A DNA stretch of 63,951 nt, counting the filler, from Lenisia limosa (lineage: Eukaryota > Protista > Breviatea), in NCBI GenBank assembly GCA_001655205.1. It is 10 parts of 10 records of this genome, joined end to end, with 100 filler letters (N's around TTAATTAATTAA, not from the genome) between each part and the next. Parts side by side here need not be neighbours in the genome. Positions count along the whole stretch, not along the records: positions 43,476 to 53,490 come from LPNZ01010777.1; 9 more parts are not named here. One strand, written 5' to 3'. This document shows positions 43,476 to 53,400 of this stretch, piece after piece. The stretch's first letter is position 1. Each line of letters starts with the position of its first letter. The notes below the pieces were generated by a model. It was not told the DNA's origin. It did no database searches and worked only from the letters and a program-made list of their open reading frames with translations. A program made the position numbers and the translations under genes.

Positions 43476-43582
43476 AAATGATAGGGTGGGAGCAGTATTG
43501 CACTAAATGATGGGGTGGGAGCAGTAATACACTAAATGATGGGGTGGGAGCAGCAATACACTAAATGATGAGGTGGGAGTAT
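43476..43582. repeat. 29-bp tandem repeat, about 3.7 copies
   Basis: AAATGATGGGGTGGGAGCAGTAATACACT units. Confidence 0.85.
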
Positions 43583-45085: not shown

Positions 45086-47918
45086 ATGCACAATGGGAAG
45101 CCCCCCCTGAAGCCTCAAGTGATGTGCCATGTCAAGGAGGTATGTTGGACTGTGTATATTCAAGTACCATCGCCTTAAGGCCTTCCCCGTTTTCCAATAA
45201 TCCAAGGAATTTCCTCAGGAACATGATCCAAATTGGGACTTTTAGTACTTTTTTTCTCATTTTGTGCTGCATTATTTTCTTTTACAACTAATTGACTAGG
45301 TTCAATGCTGGAGCATCTTATTTTGGAATGGAGGGACCGCGAACCTCAAATTGGGTATGTTGGCCATCATCCAGTGTTCATGGAGTTGTAGACAGATTAT
45401 TGGTTTATGTAATTGGATAGTACATGTCATGTATAATTTAATACATCACATGTAGTTATAGATGATATGTTTTGTACCCTTTTCAGTATTCTTTTTACAA
45501 GGGTGGAAGGAACCAAAACATGTATTATAATACATTACATGAAGTCTAATATCATAAGCTTTGTAGATAATCTTATCATATTTATTGTATCTAACAATGC
45601 TTTCGTTCACATTGTAGAATCCAGGGGCACCGAGTGGAATCCTATGTGAATATAGACACCCCAGCAGTGGCGCCACCCCAGGCTGGGCATGAGGAAGTCT
45701 TTGCTGAACATCACAGTGACCCTTCTCATTCTTCAGCCCAGGGTATGTTGGTGTCACTCTTTCTGGAATGTTGACCCATAAGTGGTTTTTGGTTTCAGTG
45801 CCAGACAATATGATGGCTTTGCTTATGCGTCTCTCAGTATCTTCTTCTTATTGGCACCTTGACCGCCTAGCTCCTCAATGTGTCTCCGGAATTGTATCGA
45901 TCAAGTCCGATGCCAACGATATTCAGTACCTGACCAGGCTTCTGACCTCAAGGCTTCTGACCGACCTTCGGCCGAAACTCGCAACTGCCCTCTCACTAGC
46001 CTCGAAAATCCACGAGCCTTCCGGTACGTTATCACAGCAAGTACTAGGACACAATCAATGAAAGAACTCCTTCAAACACAATTGTCGAATGTTTTCTCGT
46101 GTCTTTTTGTTCACCATGTCATGATCTCTTCGTTTGTTTTTCTAAACGTTTTTTTACAAACTCACCTCCTGTAGCCCTTTGTATGACCCCGCAATCGTTG
46201 TCCTTCCACTCATCTCCCGTCTCAACAAATCGCTCCGGCAAACGAAAAAGCAAGAACCTTCAAGACTCGCCAAGGGTTTGCCTGTCCCTGGATTTAGATA
46301 TTATATTCTGAGGAGCAGATTGAAAGCTGGAGCGGCGGTATTTTCCATCATCTTTTATCAACTTTCTCGTTATTTCTTGACCATATCTGGACCTTTTCTC
46401 CGCAAAGTTAGATTGTTTTGATAGAACTTTTGGAATTAATTGCAGATGAATAAGGTGATTCGGTCAAAACTTCATGATTTTAATAACGAGCAGGCTTCGC
46501 AAACCCCACCCCACTCACCACATAGTTTGCCGACCTTCCGCCCCCAGGTTTTAATAATTCGCTGGGCTCAATGATCTCCGTTCGTGGTATCCCGTCGAAA
46601 CCTTCAAGAAAGATTGCCTCGTCAAAAAGCGTTGTTTTTGATGTCAGTTGGGCTGGTCAATTGTTTCGATTCTGTCAACTCATGAAGCGTTATATTTAGA
46701 ATCTTTCCCTTTTGGATTTAAAAACGAATAATAAATAATACTATTCTACAATTGTTTTGAGACAATTATAGGTGGACGGCCTCCATATACTATCATGTGA
46801 TTAATGTAGAAGAGATGAGAAATTTAACAAGGCTGTTCATATTATACGATATGTTATGTTTGTCTCTGATGACCTCCCAGAGTCGACCTGTTTGGCGTAC
46901 ACCTCTGCCGAATATTATGGGGTTGCATATCAGTGGCGATGGAGTCGGTGCTATACAAGAGGTCTGTCTGATGGGGATTTATTGAAGTTATATTTTGCTT
47001 TTGGAATTTTTTATTATTCACTTCGTTCAATGTTTATTATTGAAATACCGCCGCCCCCCTCTATTCTCACTCAATAGAATCCCCCAAAAGAGCCAACTCT
47101 ATCCCTTCGGCCAAAAGTGTTGCCCCAAATCCAGCCTAAGCCAAATAAAGAACTTCTACTGCAGATATCGTCCAAAGGCCGAGTGGGTTTCTCCAACGTG
47201 TTCTTTTTTATCTTCGCTTAGGTTTTACTGTTTTTCTGTTTTTAACCGGAACAACAAATTAGAATTTTCAAGTTAATTATTTGTGATTTGATCAGCTGTT
47301 TTGTTCAAACATTTTCCTTCTTTTATTTCCTTTGAACCCCTCCATATTCTGTTGAACCCCTCCATATTCTGTTGAACTGCCCCATATTCTGTTGAACCCC
47401 TCCATATTCTGTTAAACCCCTCCATATTCTGTTGAACCCCTCCATATTCTGTTGAACNNNNNNNNNNNNNNNNNNNNNNNNNNNNNNNNNNNNNNNNNNN
47501 NNNNNNNNNNNNNNNNNNNNNNNNNNNNNNNNNNNNNNNNNNNNNNNNNNNNNNNNNNNNNNNNNNNNNNCTGTTGAACTGCCCAATATTTTTAGGGCTC
47601 TGTGCAATTAATTTTTTAAAAAAATGACAAAATTTGGAATTAAAGTGCCTGAAATTGAGATTACATTATACAATGTGGTACTTCAAATTTACAATTATTT
47701 TTTCAATTAATTGCACGGGGCTCTGGTTATTTTGTTCTGTTGAAGTCGCGGGTGCTAATGTTCAGACTGGAGCCCTGGAGCCCCGACCCTACACCGCCAG
47801 GGACACCCGAAATCCTCGCAGCCGTAATCAGATCCGATCCGGGAGCTCGCTAAAGGCAAAAAAGACCCTTGATTTCCAGCCGAATTTCTTGGGGCTGCAA
47901 GGGAGGGGGTACAGCTAA
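45086..47918 (+). CDS. Multi-exon hypothetical protein
   Basis: GT/AG-bounded exons, e.g. about 45799-46023 (VPDNMMALLMRLSVSSSYWHLDRL..), about 46548-46690, and a last exon ending ..QGRGYS* at 47918. No family recognised. Confidence 0.45.
47332..47590. repeat. 20-bp minisatellite TTGAACCCCTCCATATTCTG (gap inside)
   Basis: At least 6 visible contiguous units before the gap and one after. Confidence 0.9.
47595..47723. mobile_element. MITE-B
   Basis: TA|GGGCTCTGTGCAATTAATT..AATTAATTGCACGGGGCTC. Confidence 0.75.
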
Positions 47919-48028
47919 GTAGGTCGGCTTCCTCTTTGATTTATTTAATGTTATGATTTAATATAGGAACTGTATTTGTACTTGGCTGGTGGAAGAAACA
48001 AAGGAGGTATGCATAAGGAAACCATTTA

Positions 48029-48533
48029 TCACTGGACAAAGTTCAGGAGCCTGTGAGTTTGGGGGAGGCGGGTGTCAAGATAGGCGGTCAACGCGTCGTC
48101 TACGGCGGCGTAGTGGCTGCTGGCAGTGTGCTGGTCATATGCGGCGGCGGACTTGAACTGCTCCAGAATAGTGAAGTGGGTGGGGTCCTCTGTTGGCGGT
48201 TAGAGAGGACAGCAACATACACACATGACACAACAAGGCAAAAGCTAAGTGTTTTTACCCCTCCAAGGCAACCCCCAAGGACCGACCTCACACACATAGT
48301 CATATTTATAGAGATGAAATAAAACAAGGTTGCATCTGGCCGAGTCCGTCCACACCATCACGCATTTTAATACAGCAATGAGAAATAAAAGGTTGTATCT
48401 GGCCGAAGCCAATAGAGCTATACGTCCCCTCACCCGAGTCCTGGAGTAGGTCAAAACGGATATTTCCGGGTTCCTGCCGGGCATATTGGGCGAGTTGCTT
48501 CAGAACGTGTTCGGCATCAGCAACTTTGTCGGG
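48029..48533 (-). CDS. Antibiotic biosynthesis monooxygenase (ABM; LsrG/YgiN-like) domain protein, last two exons
   Basis: Exons 48533-48434 and 48189-48029: PDKVADAEHVLKQLAQYARQEPGNIRFDLLQDSEDPTHFTILEQFKSAAAYDQHTASSHYAAV..*. Shows the typical EPG..FDL.QD.EDP..F...E.F...A...H...HY pattern. First exon probably in the gap 48550-48710. Confidence 0.8.
48311..48411 (-). repeat. Repeat family D (two tandem partial copies in the ABM intron)
   Basis: Consensus TATAATCCAATATCTCTTATAAGCGTGATGGTGTGGACGGCTTCGGCCAGATACAACCTTGTTTTATTTCTCAT. Other copies at 21738-21800, 22899-22949, 28701-28730, 31428-31503, 34886-34985, 40400-40480, 42658-42685, 56917-57000. Confidence 0.75.
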
Positions 48534-49591
48534 CTGGGGGGGGGGGGGGNNNNNNNNNNNNNNNNNNNNNNNNNNNNNNNNNNNNNNNNNNNNNNNNNNN
48601 NNNNNNNNNNNNNNNNNNNNNNNNNNNNNNNNNNNNNNNNNNNNNNNNNNNNNNNNNNNNNNNNNNNNNNNNNNNNNNNNNNNNNNNNNNNNNNNNNNNN
48701 NNNNNNNNNNNAAAACAGAAATAACAAACACGGGGAGAGAGGGTTAAAAACATCAAAACAAACAAAGCCCAGGCCAATGGCCTCTGCAGCACCGCATTCC
48801 AGGGGGGATATTCTATGGGGTTATTAACAAAAACAGCTGAGAGGCAAAACCTCCAAAAAACGGTGTTTCACTCTTGGATTTAATATACAATGTCAAAAAA
48901 AGCGCAAACAATCAACTTGGATAGCAAAGCAATTATCAAAGAACGTTGAGGCTAGTTAAGATTACAACTGTCGGAAACTTCAAAGCAAATTATCCAGCAA
49001 ATAAATTCTCCAAACGGTGGGGGTTATCGTGGGGATAAAATTGAAACAAAAAAAAAGCACAGGGTTTACAACAACAAAATAAACAAAGCCNNNNNNNNNN
49101 NNNNNNNNNNNNNNNNNNNNNNNNNNNNNNNNNNNNNNNNNNNNNNNNNNNNNNNNNNNNNNNNNNNNNNNNNNNNNNNNNNNNNNNNNNNNNNNNNNNN
49201 NNNNNNNNNNNNNNNNNNNNCTTTACTATTCTCAAAGGTCAATAACCAACCGTCGGAGCAACCACAATAACAAAATAAATCAGAATTGAGCGACATTGGA
49301 GGAAAGCCTGAAAAAAGGGCATATGATGATACTAAGACTGTTTCTAGTGCGGGGCTAACACCAAAAACAGATAGACTTGAAATGACTAGGAAGTACCAGG
49401 ATGACAGGAAGCTAAATTGTCCAACGTAATCCTTTGGTTCTCATCGTGCCCCTTCTTGTACTTTTGCCAAGACCCCCCCCCCCCCNNNNNNNNNNNNNNN
49501 NNNNNNNNNNNNNNNNNNNNNNNNNNNNNNNNNNNNNNNNNNNNNNNNNNNNNNNNNNNNNNNNNNNNNNNNNNNNNNNNNNNNNNNNNNN

Positions 49592-50170
49592 GGGATTACT
49601 CCGGGAGCTGAGACCACTGTATCAAGCTTATGCTCCTTCAGAATCTCGGAAATCTGGTCACAGTCGCTTTGCGTTTCTAATTCGTGAAATAAAGCTTGAA
49701 TATGTACACGAGAAAAAAATAATCACAATAATCCCCATGAATTTAATCTTGAATATACACATGCACTATTCCATGAATGTGTACGCACAGGTAATAAAGA
49801 ATATGAATATGCTCATGCATCTAGCTGGTACACATAGAGGTGTTTCAATAATTAATACATAATATATTCAGCTGAGAAACACTGCATCGCATCTTTGCAC
49901 CTCCAACCACAGTACTCAAGAGGGGCTTGGCCATCAGTTCCTGCAATATTCACCAGAGCCTCAGCAGCAGTTCTGCTGAATCTGAGGGAATAAGAGGAGA
50001 GTCAAATTGATCGACACCTACCCTGTGGCGTGCTCAACTCCGCTTATTACCTCATCATAAGTGTGAACGTCGTCGTTAAAGAGGTACACGGTGAAGTGCG
50101 AGGCTGGAGAGGGGTTTCCAAGGCTAACTCCAAGGAAAACAAAAAAACAAAGTAGTCCAATTAGCTTCAT
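49592..50170 (-). CDS. Signal peptide plus ClpS-like domain protein (3' end unresolved)
   Basis: Exons 50170-50022, 49981-49908, 49676-gap: MKLIGLLCFFVFLGVSLG-NPSPASHFTVYLFNDDVHTYDEVISGVEHATGFSRTAAEALVNIAGTDGQAPLEYCETQSDCDQISEILKEHKLDTVVS. Splice phases (2, then 1) are consistent. Confidence 0.68.
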
Positions 50171-50463
50171 TTCTTAATAGTGTTTATACACAATAATGCT
50201 AATCTACGACTCTTCAACGCCTCTTATCCCCGTTTTTCCTATTTTCATTTAACACTATTATATCTGGGATTGCAAATAACCCTAATTTTCTTATGCTATA
50301 AAAAGGCCACTGTCCAATGGTCATACCTCTACGTATTGTCACACTAACAAGTGCAACACGTGTGTGCTGTGTGTGTGGATCGTCGGAAGGAGAAAAAAGG
50401 AAAGAAGCCGAGCCCTTCTCTTCCCACTTTTCTTATCCCCAGTCATCCACTATCATCCAGGAA

Positions 50464-53400
50464 ATGATGAGGATGAAGTCTTTTGTTGGAGTACCGCCGA
50501 TTCCGATCCTCGTATTCCTCTTAGCTTGTCTTGGTCATCTCCACGTCATTTGTGCCGCACCTCTCAATGGGGATGACTTCTCCTCAGCTGTCCTCTTCAA
50601 CCTGCCGTGGCTTCAAGCGGCAAAAAGCTCATGTAGGCTCTTTAAAGTGTTTTTCTGTGAGAATGGCTGTGTTCGGATTGCTGGCGGCATTTGTTCTTGG
50701 AGGAGAAATGTATCCACTTCCCTTCAGGTGATTGGTTGTTCTGTACACAGTGATATGGAACCAATCGCGTGTATATCTCTGTAAATAACATTATTTAAGA
50801 AAAAAAACGTAATACTACTCTCATGTATACATTCATTAGGAAACCTTCTCAAGCTAAACCCCTGTTTTCAAGCTCACCATTTTAGATTTGGATCAGAGGT
50901 TCTTGATCAGAATTCCTGCAGTTTCTGGTTTCCCACAAGCATCACAGTTTGAGGGGGGTGCATGGGGTTATGAAACTCAACGTTAGTATGAGTATCGTAT
51001 GTATTTTGTGTTTAAAAAGATGGGGGGGTAGATTAGATTTAAAAAGATGGAAGTGATTTCTTTTTAGAGATGAACAAGGGTGCTTCTTGAGACAGCTTTG
51101 GATAGAAAGCAAAGCCACTCAGGTATGCTCCTTTCAAGGGGGTTAGTTTGAATGACTTGAAATCTGTCACAACGGATTTAATCATTTTGGAAGTTTTGGA
51201 ACCACTTGCAGCATTTCTGTCGAATCTAATTCTATACAGTGCTTCCCGGACAGTATTTCCATCGTCCTGCTGAATCAAACTACCTACGAGCAAACTTTGG
51301 CTACGTATGAATGGTTATGTGAGGGTTACATTGGTGTTGAAATTGGGGTGGTTTTGTGTCCATATTGATTTCATGCGGTTCATTCAATGCAGCAGTTTTT
51401 AAATTTCAATTGTATTTATTACTATTTACCATTCTTTGCTCACATTAAAGGAGTCAGTTGGAGAAAGACGCCATGAAACCTGATAAAACCCCAGTGGTGG
51501 GTGGGGTATCTTGTTTTAATCAAGGTCAGGGGTTTCGTGGTGGTTGATAGAGGCCGAGCTTCACTTCCGCAAATGTTGATATTACAACTGTTCTTTTTTG
51601 ACCGAAATGAACCCTTTTGAGTTTCTGGTTTTATTGTTTTAGCCTCGAGTGTTGTTCGAAACCTGTTACCCATTTGTACATGACGCTGACCTTTTGGCCT
51701 TCGTATACTGCTCTAAAGCGACACAATACGCCTCATCTGTGGGGTTGAGACATGTTCTGATTAGGGCTTCACTTCGGTTCGAAAAAAAGACTGAATTTAT
51801 CGATGAATCATCGAAAATTATCGATATTATACTGGTATTATTCGAACCGAAGTGAAGACCTAGTTCTAACGCACCAATAGAATTAATCGAGATACGTTTT
51901 CTTTGATGGGGAATTGTCATTTATGGTATTTAGCTCTCCTATGGCCTCGGGCAAATTTCAGTGGAGTTGGAAGACCGCAGCACAAACGGGCGGTACACAA
52001 GCTTTAATGTTTCGTATGGGGGNNNNNNNNNNNNNNNNNNNNNNNNNNNNNNNNNNNNNNNNNNNNNNNNNNNNNNNNNNNNNNNNNNNNNNNNNNNNNN
52101 NNNNNNNNNNNNNNTCACTTCAATCCATTCAAGATTCATGTATTATTTGGGTGGCTGGATGCAGTAAAGTTTACGATACGCAGCTACTATCGAACCGAGT
52201 ACCGGTCCTCCCTGGACTCTGGCTACAAACCAACGATTTCGGGTAATAACTTCTTCCACAATCGCCAATCGTATTCCTCAGGATTCAGCATGTCCCTTTC
52301 TGTCAAACATCAAGGTTGAGGGCTGCTCAAAGAAAAAGCAAGAGTTTGTTTGAGAGAGTAAAATACAGTAACCAGTTGAGATTATTTTTGACAATTTTCA
52401 CAGATTAAAAGTAACTTCCTTCAGTGTACTTTACCATCCTTACCTGAATAGTATTTGATTCATTTACCCCTCAGAATCAGGCAATATGACCACAATTGCT
52501 TTGAATTCCCTTCCGGCTTACAACTACCGTCTCAAGGACAGGGGTGAGAGGGGTGGGGTCTTTTGATGAAAATGAAAATATACTCAATACAATCCAGGGA
52601 TGAAGGGATTCCATAAACAAAAGCAATTCTACTACTCATCTCACTTGTGTCAATAATTAGGAATTCGTTTCCGCAAATGAATTAATTTCTCAATAAAAGC
52701 AAATTTGAAGTTGAAACACTTCTTTTCTCCCGATGGGTTGACGTTTTAGGTAATAGAGACTGTACTGCAGACGGTGGTGTTGCTGTTGGTGGAGGCTGCA
52801 GGTTGGGGAGGGGGGGTCCTAGATGGTTATGTTAGCTGTAGATTGGGGGAAGGGTCTCGAATGGTGAGGTCAACTAGGAGGTGTATAGAGGTCACACCCT
52901 CTGAGTCCTAATATTGCAGGTAATTTGTCAAAGTATCAGGAAAACAACGGGAGGATGCTCTAACACCATTATTATTATTCTAATTTACTAATTAGGCTTG
53001 AGCGGCGTTACCGAGGATTCGTTGATTTGGAGTACGAACAAGACTTATGCGTAAGTTAAGATTTGATTAATTGCTCCTACTATCTCCTTTTATTTCTCCA
53101 TTTGTACTATTCACATAAATTGTTACCATTCGTGAATGTGGAAGTGGAACTGGCATAATGATATCTCAGGAAGTATTTTCCGTCCCAGCGGCTCGGGTGG
53201 TGACAACTTTTCGCATGTATGCATCCCGAGTTACCATGGTCGATTGGACCTTTGAGGTACCCGGGGTTTTTTTGGGGGGAGTTTTTTTTTTCACAATTGA
53301 AATATATTAACCGTATTTTTGATCATAATAGTATATGATATACATATCATATTTATACATATTACGTTTGGAAACATATCGATATAGTTAATCGGCATTG
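50464..53400 (+). CDS. Multi-exon putative secreted or membrane protein (truncated at linker)
   Basis: MMRMKSFVGVPPIPILVFLLACLGHLHVICA-APLNG.. is signal-peptide-like; more than 10 short GT/AG-bounded exons follow to about 53250. No family recognised. Confidence 0.45.
51764..51860. mobile_element. MITE-A (near consensus)
   Basis: TA|GGGCTTCACTTCGGTTCGAA..TTCGAACCGAAGTGAAGACC|TA. Confidence 0.85.

Follow-up and report, generated by a model that had tools for sequence, protein, structure and literature searches.

A UBR-type ClpS-like domain fused to an LsrG/YgiN-type ABM domain behind a signal-peptide-like N-terminus in the breviate Lenisia limosa

The window analysed here is a stretch of 63,951 nucleotides of DNA from Lenisia limosa, a protist placed in Breviatea. 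On its minus strand lies a five-exon gene running from 50170 to 48029, whose exon lengths (149+74+128+100+161) add up to 612 nt, exactly 203 codons and a stop. GT..AG dinucleotides are present at every visible intron boundary. The order of parts in the encoded 203-aa precursor is a signal-peptide-like N-terminus, a ClpS-like domain of the UBR type and an ABM domain of the LsrG/YgiN type. The features of the gene are as follows:

50022 to 50170, minus strand: exon 1, 149 nt, residues 1-50, with the predicted signal peptide, strand beta1 (FTVYLF), the NDDVH motif and helix 1; 100% identity in tblastn
50117 to 50170, minus strand: predicted cleavable signal peptide MKLIGLLCFFVFLGVSLG, codons 1-18, from hydropathy and hand inspection
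49603 to 50095, minus strand: span of the ClpS-like fold, residues 26-99, beta-alpha-alpha-beta-alpha-beta, split by introns 1 and 2; from Pfam, the UBR2 match, AF2 and Foldseek
49982 to 50021, minus strand: intron 1, 40 nt, GT..AG (CT..AC on the plus strand), skipped in the RNA contig
49908 to 49981, minus strand: exon 2, 74 nt, residues 50-75, with helix 2, Gly64 (at the position of E. coli His66) and strand 2; RNA contig and tblastn
49677 to 49907, minus strand: intron 2, 231 nt, GT..AG; RNA contig
49592 to 49676, minus strand: exon 3 as far as it is visible, coding for residues 75-103 with helix 3 and strand 3 of the ClpS-like fold; tblastn
48434 to 48533, minus strand: exon 4, 100 nt, coding for residues 118-151, with which the ABM domain begins its first half, EPGNIRFDLLQD among them; AG acceptor and GT donor present; tblastn
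48029 to 48189, minus strand: exon 5, 161 nt, residues 151-203, which make up the second half of the ABM domain, and the TGA stop (48031-48029); tblastn
47940 to 47945, minus strand: AATAAA, about 85 nt past the stop codon, a possible polyadenylation signal read from the sequence

The gene is real, spliced and expressed, and it consists of five exons. This stretch is contained in two runs of a 2016 study, one of DNA and the other of polyA 'metatranscriptomic' RNA. A 559-nt contig of the polyA RNA carries both splice junctions that had been predicted from the genomic sequence, 50022/49981 and 49908/49676. It begins at 50073, downstream of the signal-peptide codons (50170-50117), and overruns the gap edge at 49592 by 348 nt, which equals the 304 nt of remaining coding sequence plus 44 nt of 3' UTR. 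Mean word depth is about 128 for this contig and about 3.8 for the contig of the neighbouring gene, a hint of high expression from a contig depth that cannot rank genes. In addition, an exhaustive phmmer search with exon 1 as query found P0001, a 203-aa Trinity/TransDecoder ORF of 'type: complete' from L. limosa (EukProt EP01086), identical to the query over residues 1-50. The three in-phase minus-strand exons of the initial annotation hold up, being 100% identical to this transcript-derived protein in tblastn; two further exons (48533-48434 and 48189-48029), equally identical to P0001 and coding for the C-terminal ABM domain, had been missed. Exon 3 runs into an N gap at 49591, and by arithmetic about 43 nt more of it, up to residue 117, lie inside the gap at 49486-49591. 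Since a contig of the DNA run spans this gap, the 14 missing codons exist in public data.

The start of the gene is documented from several sides. P0001 begins with MKLIGLL, at the same ATG as genomic exon 1 (50170), so the 5' end is supported indirectly by an independent 'complete' ORF, and an in-frame TAA stands two codons upstream of that ATG. Furthermore, M1 is the sole Met in P0001; hence no downstream start could yield a form without the hydrophobic N-terminus.

Upstream, the gene faces a divergent neighbour across a short spacer, and the remainder of the piece is interrupted by assembly gaps and bounded by short repeats:

50171 to 50463, between the two genes: shared intergenic region, 293 bp, presumed bidirectional promoter
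50464 to 51305, continuing near 51453, plus strand: divergent neighbour gene, ATG at 50464; a loose end of its RNA contig matches the next exon near 51453
47458 to 47570, 48550 to 48711, 49091 to 49220, 49486 to 49591 and 52023 to 52114: five N gaps within the piece
47332 to 47457: tandem repeat, 20-nt unit in 6.3 copies, abutting the gap at 47458, downstream of the gene's 3' end
43476 to 43579: tandem repeat, 29-nt unit in 3.6 copies, at the edge of the piece

A second RNA contig contains GT..AG-spliced exons of the neighbour at 50595-50632, 50886-50946, 51068-51119 and 51237-51305. With its ATG 293 bp off, as against the roughly 300 bp first estimated, the neighbour leaves no room for a UBR box ahead of the ClpS-like domain, and the earlier argument against a UBR N-terminus thus stands. 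The neighbour also opens with a hydrophobic, signal-peptide-like segment, MMRMKSFVGVPPIPILVFLLACLGHLHVICAAP; given that both N-termini look like signal peptides, two putative secretory proteins would share the 293-bp bidirectional spacer. Pfam gave no match in exon 1 of the neighbour or in the other ORFs of the piece, an Rfam scan returned no match, and a promoter and terminator scan, built for bacteria and irrelevant to a eukaryote, was empty. Two of the gaps are flanked on their low-coordinate side by homopolymers (G14 at 48536-48549 and C13 at 49473-49485), which looks like an assembly or masking artefact.

Targeting of the protein was judged by hand from the charge of the n-region, a hydrophobic core of 7-15 residues and small residues at -3 and -1, and all three features are seen by hand inspection and hydropathy. 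The segment MKLIGLLCFFVFLGVSLG has Lys2, a hydrophobic core of 13-15 residues, and Ser at -3 and Gly at -1 ahead of Asn19; over residues 3-11 the Kyte-Doolittle hydropathy averages about 3.0. A signal-peptide-like hydrophobic N-terminus does directly precede the ClpS-family domain, as had been proposed. The mature chain (residues 19-203; about 185 aa, about 20.4 kDa, pI 4.7) has no KDEL-type end, no second hydrophobic segment and no N-glycosylation sequon. Judged on these sequence features, the protein is likely to be truly targeted to the secretory pathway.

Assignment of the first domain to the ClpS family, which had been suggested by inspection, is borne out by profile search. PF02617 (ClpS) matches residues 23-86 of P0001 with 30.9 bits, above its gathering cut-off of 23 (E 2.4e-7); exon 1 by itself scores 20.8 bits, below that cut-off. 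When all PDB chains were searched by sequence with phmmer, human UBR2 (9wbv, residues 228-287) was found at E 0.007 with a single one-residue gap, UBR1 was the other ClpS-type chain matched (E 1.5), and no bacterial ClpS appeared at E<=10. The UBR-like flavour noted at the outset is thus seen in the best match among solved structures, and it is seen again in the N-D-x-x-H pair D33/H36, which is kept and aligns with LFNDEVHTY of UBR2 and LFNDEHHSY of UBR1. The spacing of D33 and H36 equals that of D251 and H254 in Schizosaccharomyces pombe Ubr11, of which a D251N, H254Y allele cannot recognise type-2 N-terminal residues (PMC4447728).

The state of the binding pocket was read from MAFFT alignments with E. 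coli ClpS and with 35 non-redundant ClpS ORFs from viral contigs. Herein, N34-D35-D36 of E. coli aligned with N32-D33-D34, Thr38 with His36, the gatekeeper Met40 with Tyr38, and His66 with Gly64. The N-D-D triplet, whose retention had been claimed, is invariant in the alignment with the 35 ClpS sequences, and the His66 column is 100% His in those 35. The bacterial-type pocket (N34, D35, D36, H66) is consequently incomplete, with N-D-D kept and Gly64 in place of the His. This replacement, first assigned by eye, was reproduced by MAFFT and by BLASTP against E. coli K-12 ClpS (NC_000913), which gave 27% identity over 49 residues. The altered specificity once read into it has to be softened: human UBR1 and UBR2 carry Asp at this position, so the UBR type normally lacks the His, and its Asp/His pair is kept here. 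Gly64 is nonetheless unlike both His and Asp, and of 26 columns that are strongly conserved among bacterial and phage ClpS only 10 are retained, in an alignment that needs a deletion of 4-5 residues. Together, Gly64 and this low retention suggest that ligand binding may be altered or lost.

An AF2 model of the domain, computed with the ClpS alignment as input, reached a pLDDT of 86.4 with beta-alpha-alpha-beta-alpha-beta topology, and the top 34 Foldseek matches were all ClpS, the best being Arabidopsis ClpS1 (7d34, TM 0.80/0.90); E. coli, Caulobacter and M. smegmatis ClpS and yeast Ubr1 (TMq 0.69) were matched as well. The predicted fold does match ClpS structures; since the model was built from a ClpS alignment, the match is partly circular and the modelling is a compatibility check with the ClpS fold. 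A single-sequence AF2 run of the whole protein gave a pLDDT of 39.6, too low for the model to be used. From the predicted cleavage site to strand 1 there are only 7 residues, as against about 25 in E. coli ClpS. The mature chain has exactly two Cys, C74 and C80, where strand 2 meets helix 3, and a C74-C80 disulfide is a conjecture.

The ClpS-like domain was previously described as stand-alone. This does not hold: it is fused, almost without a linker, to an LsrG/YgiN-like ABM domain, which matches PF03992 over residues 110-179 with 63.5 bits (cut-off 23.1, E 2.1e-17) and which escaped notice because it lies beyond the assembly gap. By profile score, both domains are members of their Pfam families, and the architecture of signal peptide, ClpS-like domain and ABM domain is very likely correct. 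The best solved relatives of the C-terminal 100 residues are 2omo, 4hl9, 4dpo and LsrG itself (3qmq), with E values from 1e-8 to 1e-6. ABM relatives are encoded at 137 loci of the bacterial and archaeal genomes scanned, mostly as stand-alone ORFs of about 100 aa and at best 45% identical; in a collection that comprises bacteria and archaea, without eukaryotes, this suggests that the ABM domain may be of bacterial origin. A few of these bacterial relatives (L016, L020, L055 and L069) sit in ORFs of 194-221 aa, not about 100 aa, and may have two domains or mis-chosen starts. Word search with the ABM part returned one metagenomic ABM protein of 114 aa (P0005).

Outside the seed motifs of the scan, D152, F156, E160, H171, H176-Y177 and R191 are kept in the ABM domain. 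An Asn that is 98% conserved in the bacterial ABM relatives is Leu131 here, by column statistics from a joint MAFFT alignment (A4, of P0001, ClpS and ABM sequences) in which the ClpS rows fell on the ABM half. Loss of this near-invariant residue makes ABM catalysis doubtful. ABM proteins of the LsrG type form homodimers and have a pocket for a small ligand (PMC12274486), and the homodimer prediction for the ABM domain scored 0.68, the same value as one control. Identity with LsrG was rejected, the score against NF007791, the equivalog model for LsrG, the (4S)-4-hydroxy-5-phosphonooxypentane-2,3-dione isomerase, being 43.1 bits, far under its cut-off of 135. The substrate of LsrG is made intracellularly; for this reason, and on account of the sub-cut-off equivalog score, a role in processing the AI-2 quorum signal is left as speculation only.

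Relatives of the protein were sought by several routes. A word search of 5.8 billion proteins with the whole protein returned only P0001 itself, and one with the ClpS part among proteins of 50-157 aa gave no match; such searches need shared 5-mers and a length window, so breviate orthologs below about 50% identity may escape them. The exhaustive phmmer search, with its query of just 50 residues, gave only three repeat-protein false positives (P0002 to P0004) besides P0001. Neither the ClpS part nor the whole protein had a relative in bacterial and archaeal genomes, JGI metagenomes or viral contigs, the 99 ESM-Atlas models nearest to the ClpS-like domain all belong to ClpS-only families, and a literature search yielded nothing relevant on ClpS with ABM or on a ClpS-like domain with a signal peptide. 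With no ortholog found, evolutionary conservation lends the function no support.

The biology of the host bears on where such a protein could act. Breviates inhabit anoxic environments as small heterotrophic amoeboflagellates and possess mitochondrion-related organelles (bioRxiv 10.64898/2026.01.29.702055), and L. limosa lives with Arcobacter partners (PMC12453579). The ClpS of a complex plastid is ruled out by taxonomy, breviates being anaerobic, plastid-less heterotrophs, and its dismissal in the initial annotation was justified.

Altogether, these results favour, with a probability of roughly 0.6, a soluble protein of the secretory pathway that combines a signal peptide, a UBR-type ClpS-like domain and an ABM domain, with a putative binding site for N-terminal residues or amino acids. 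According to this reading, the protein would enter the ER and would end up either secreted or in an endolysosomal or phagosomal lumen. The pocket of the ClpS-like domain would bind a free alpha-amino group together with a bulky side chain, candidate ligands being the N-terminal residue of a peptide or protein, a dipeptide or a free amino acid. The ABM domain would let the protein homodimerise and would offer a pocket for small ligands, whether or not it also acts as a catalyst. Taken by itself, the binding of N-terminal residues or amino acids by the ClpS-like domain is a tentative proposal, drawn from the residues of the pocket and somewhat less probable than its absence. The protein cannot work as either a ClpS adaptor or a UBR ligase, because it is without the N-terminal extension of ClpS and without the UBR box and RING region of the ligases, and because neither a Clp unfoldase (ClpA/ClpC) nor the ubiquitin system is expected in that compartment.

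Three other explanations of the data have to be weighed, two of which concern the N-terminus. The 'signal peptide' could be a gene-model artefact, namely the translation of a pyrimidine-rich tract (TTTGTTTTTTTGTTTTCCTTGGAGTTAG / CCCCTCTCCAG) belonging to a 5' intron or UTR, with the true start elsewhere. Two AGs that follow pyrimidine-rich tracts inside the segment (50124 and 50104) and the end of the RNA contig at 50073 would suit this idea; however, that end matches neither candidate acceptor (50123/50103), the 'complete' Trinity ORF starts at the same ATG and follows the genome collinearly from there, two codons before this ATG there is an in-frame stop, no second Met occurs anywhere in the protein and the ATG of the neighbour on the opposite strand is just 293 bp away, so that an artefact is very unlikely. 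Alternatively, the N-terminus could be an uncleaved signal anchor or another targeting signal, for example to the mitochondrion-related organelle, leaving the ClpS-like domain tethered to a membrane or beside an organellar Clp-type machine. In favour of this, E72 and E75 are kept equivalents of the acidic residues E79 and E82 in the helix 3 motif of ClpS, which play a role in ClpA binding. The hydrophobic core is, however, only about 15 residues long, contains two interrupting Gly and leads into a good cleavage motif at -3/-1, the N-terminus has neither Arg nor the amphipathic character of a mitochondrial presequence, and the N-terminal extension of ClpS is missing, only 7 residues preceding strand 1. 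The word Clp is also absent from the preprint on the breviate organelle proteome (bioRxiv 10.64898/2026.01.29.702055), and an anchored or organellar protein is accordingly judged very unlikely.

A more serious competitor accepts secretion and disputes the reading of N-termini. In that case the ClpS-like domain would be a degenerate scaffold, a mere accessory at the N-terminus of what would in function be a secreted enzyme or small-molecule binder of the ABM type. Gly at the His66/Asp position, the retention of 10 of 26 ClpS-conserved columns, and a ClpS Pfam score (30.9 bits) much weaker than that of the ABM domain (63.5 bits) all point this way, as do the many bacterial relatives of the ABM part (at most 45% identity) and the precedent of a secreted ABM protein in Magnaporthe oryzae (PMC5472320). 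Against it, N-D-D and the UBR-type Asp/His pair that is genetically required for type-2 recognition are all kept, and the ABM domain has itself lost a near-invariant Asn. This degenerate-scaffold reading is given a chance of around one in four.

The preferred reading, a soluble secretory-pathway protein that would bind N-terminal residues or amino acids, can be extended to a bolder form, which is a distinctly speculative long shot. The protein would then work as a dimer, either secreted or phagolysosomal. Its UBR-type pocket would sense or capture hydrophobic residues at the N-termini of peptides, or else free amino acids or dipeptides, derived for instance from prey or Arcobacter epibionts, and the fused ABM pocket would link this step to the chemistry or the binding of small molecules. 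Such a protein would be the first N-recognin-type reader outside the cytosol and the organelle stroma. In bacteria, in plastids and in the cytosol of eukaryotes, N-degron recognition is defined by ClpS and the UBR N-domains. To our knowledge, a ClpS-like module that reads N-terminal residues is known only from the cytosol and plastids, and the ClpS and UBR N-domains known to us always pass their substrates to a protease or a ubiquitin ligase. Here an N-recognin module is found in a new fusion and, with its apparent place in the secretory pathway, in a new compartment. If this is true, a module that binds N-terminal residues lends itself to reuse, in extracytosolic space, as a free ligand-binding domain, and a natural protein that is small (about 20 kDa) and easy to express would be at hand for probing pocket binding. 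As a binder of N-terminal amino acids, the ClpS-family scaffold has practical interest too. The case so far is a single orphan gene of one poorly studied protist, with its function inferred from sequence.

With bacterial ABM proteins of the LsrG/YgiN type, the Lenisia domain has the EPGNIRFD, H171 and H176-Y177 motifs in common; unlike them, it has Leu131 in place of the near-invariant Asn, is fused and behind a predicted signal peptide, and is encoded by a gene with spliceosomal introns. The Abm enzyme of M. oryzae, which is without a ClpS-like domain, is a eukaryotic ABM protein that is secreted, as is predicted for the Lenisia protein, and Abm acts on a small-molecule signal of the partner organism (PMC5472320), a likeness offered as an analogy only. 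Bacterial, phage and plastid ClpS, the adaptor of ClpAP/ClpCP, shares the PF02617 match, N-D-D and the beta-alpha-alpha-beta-alpha-beta topology with the Lenisia domain, and differs from it in sequence (about 20-25% identity), in His66 (Gly here), Thr38 (His) and Met40 (Tyr), and in possessing the flexible N-terminal extension used for hand-over to ClpA/ClpC. Unlike the N-domains of UBR1, UBR2 and Ubr11, which form part of ligases of about 1,700-2,000 aa, the Lenisia domain comes without a UBR box or RING, the whole ORF being 203 aa long and starting 25 residues before the domain; it lies behind a predicted signal peptide and would not be cytosolic, has Gly where UBR1/2 have Asp, and is fused to an ABM domain. 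Helix 3 is short in both, and by sequence the best match among solved structures is to the type-2 site of these N-domains, with which it shares the motif LFND[DE]VHTY[DE]xVI, including the Asp and His needed in Ubr11 (PMC4447728).
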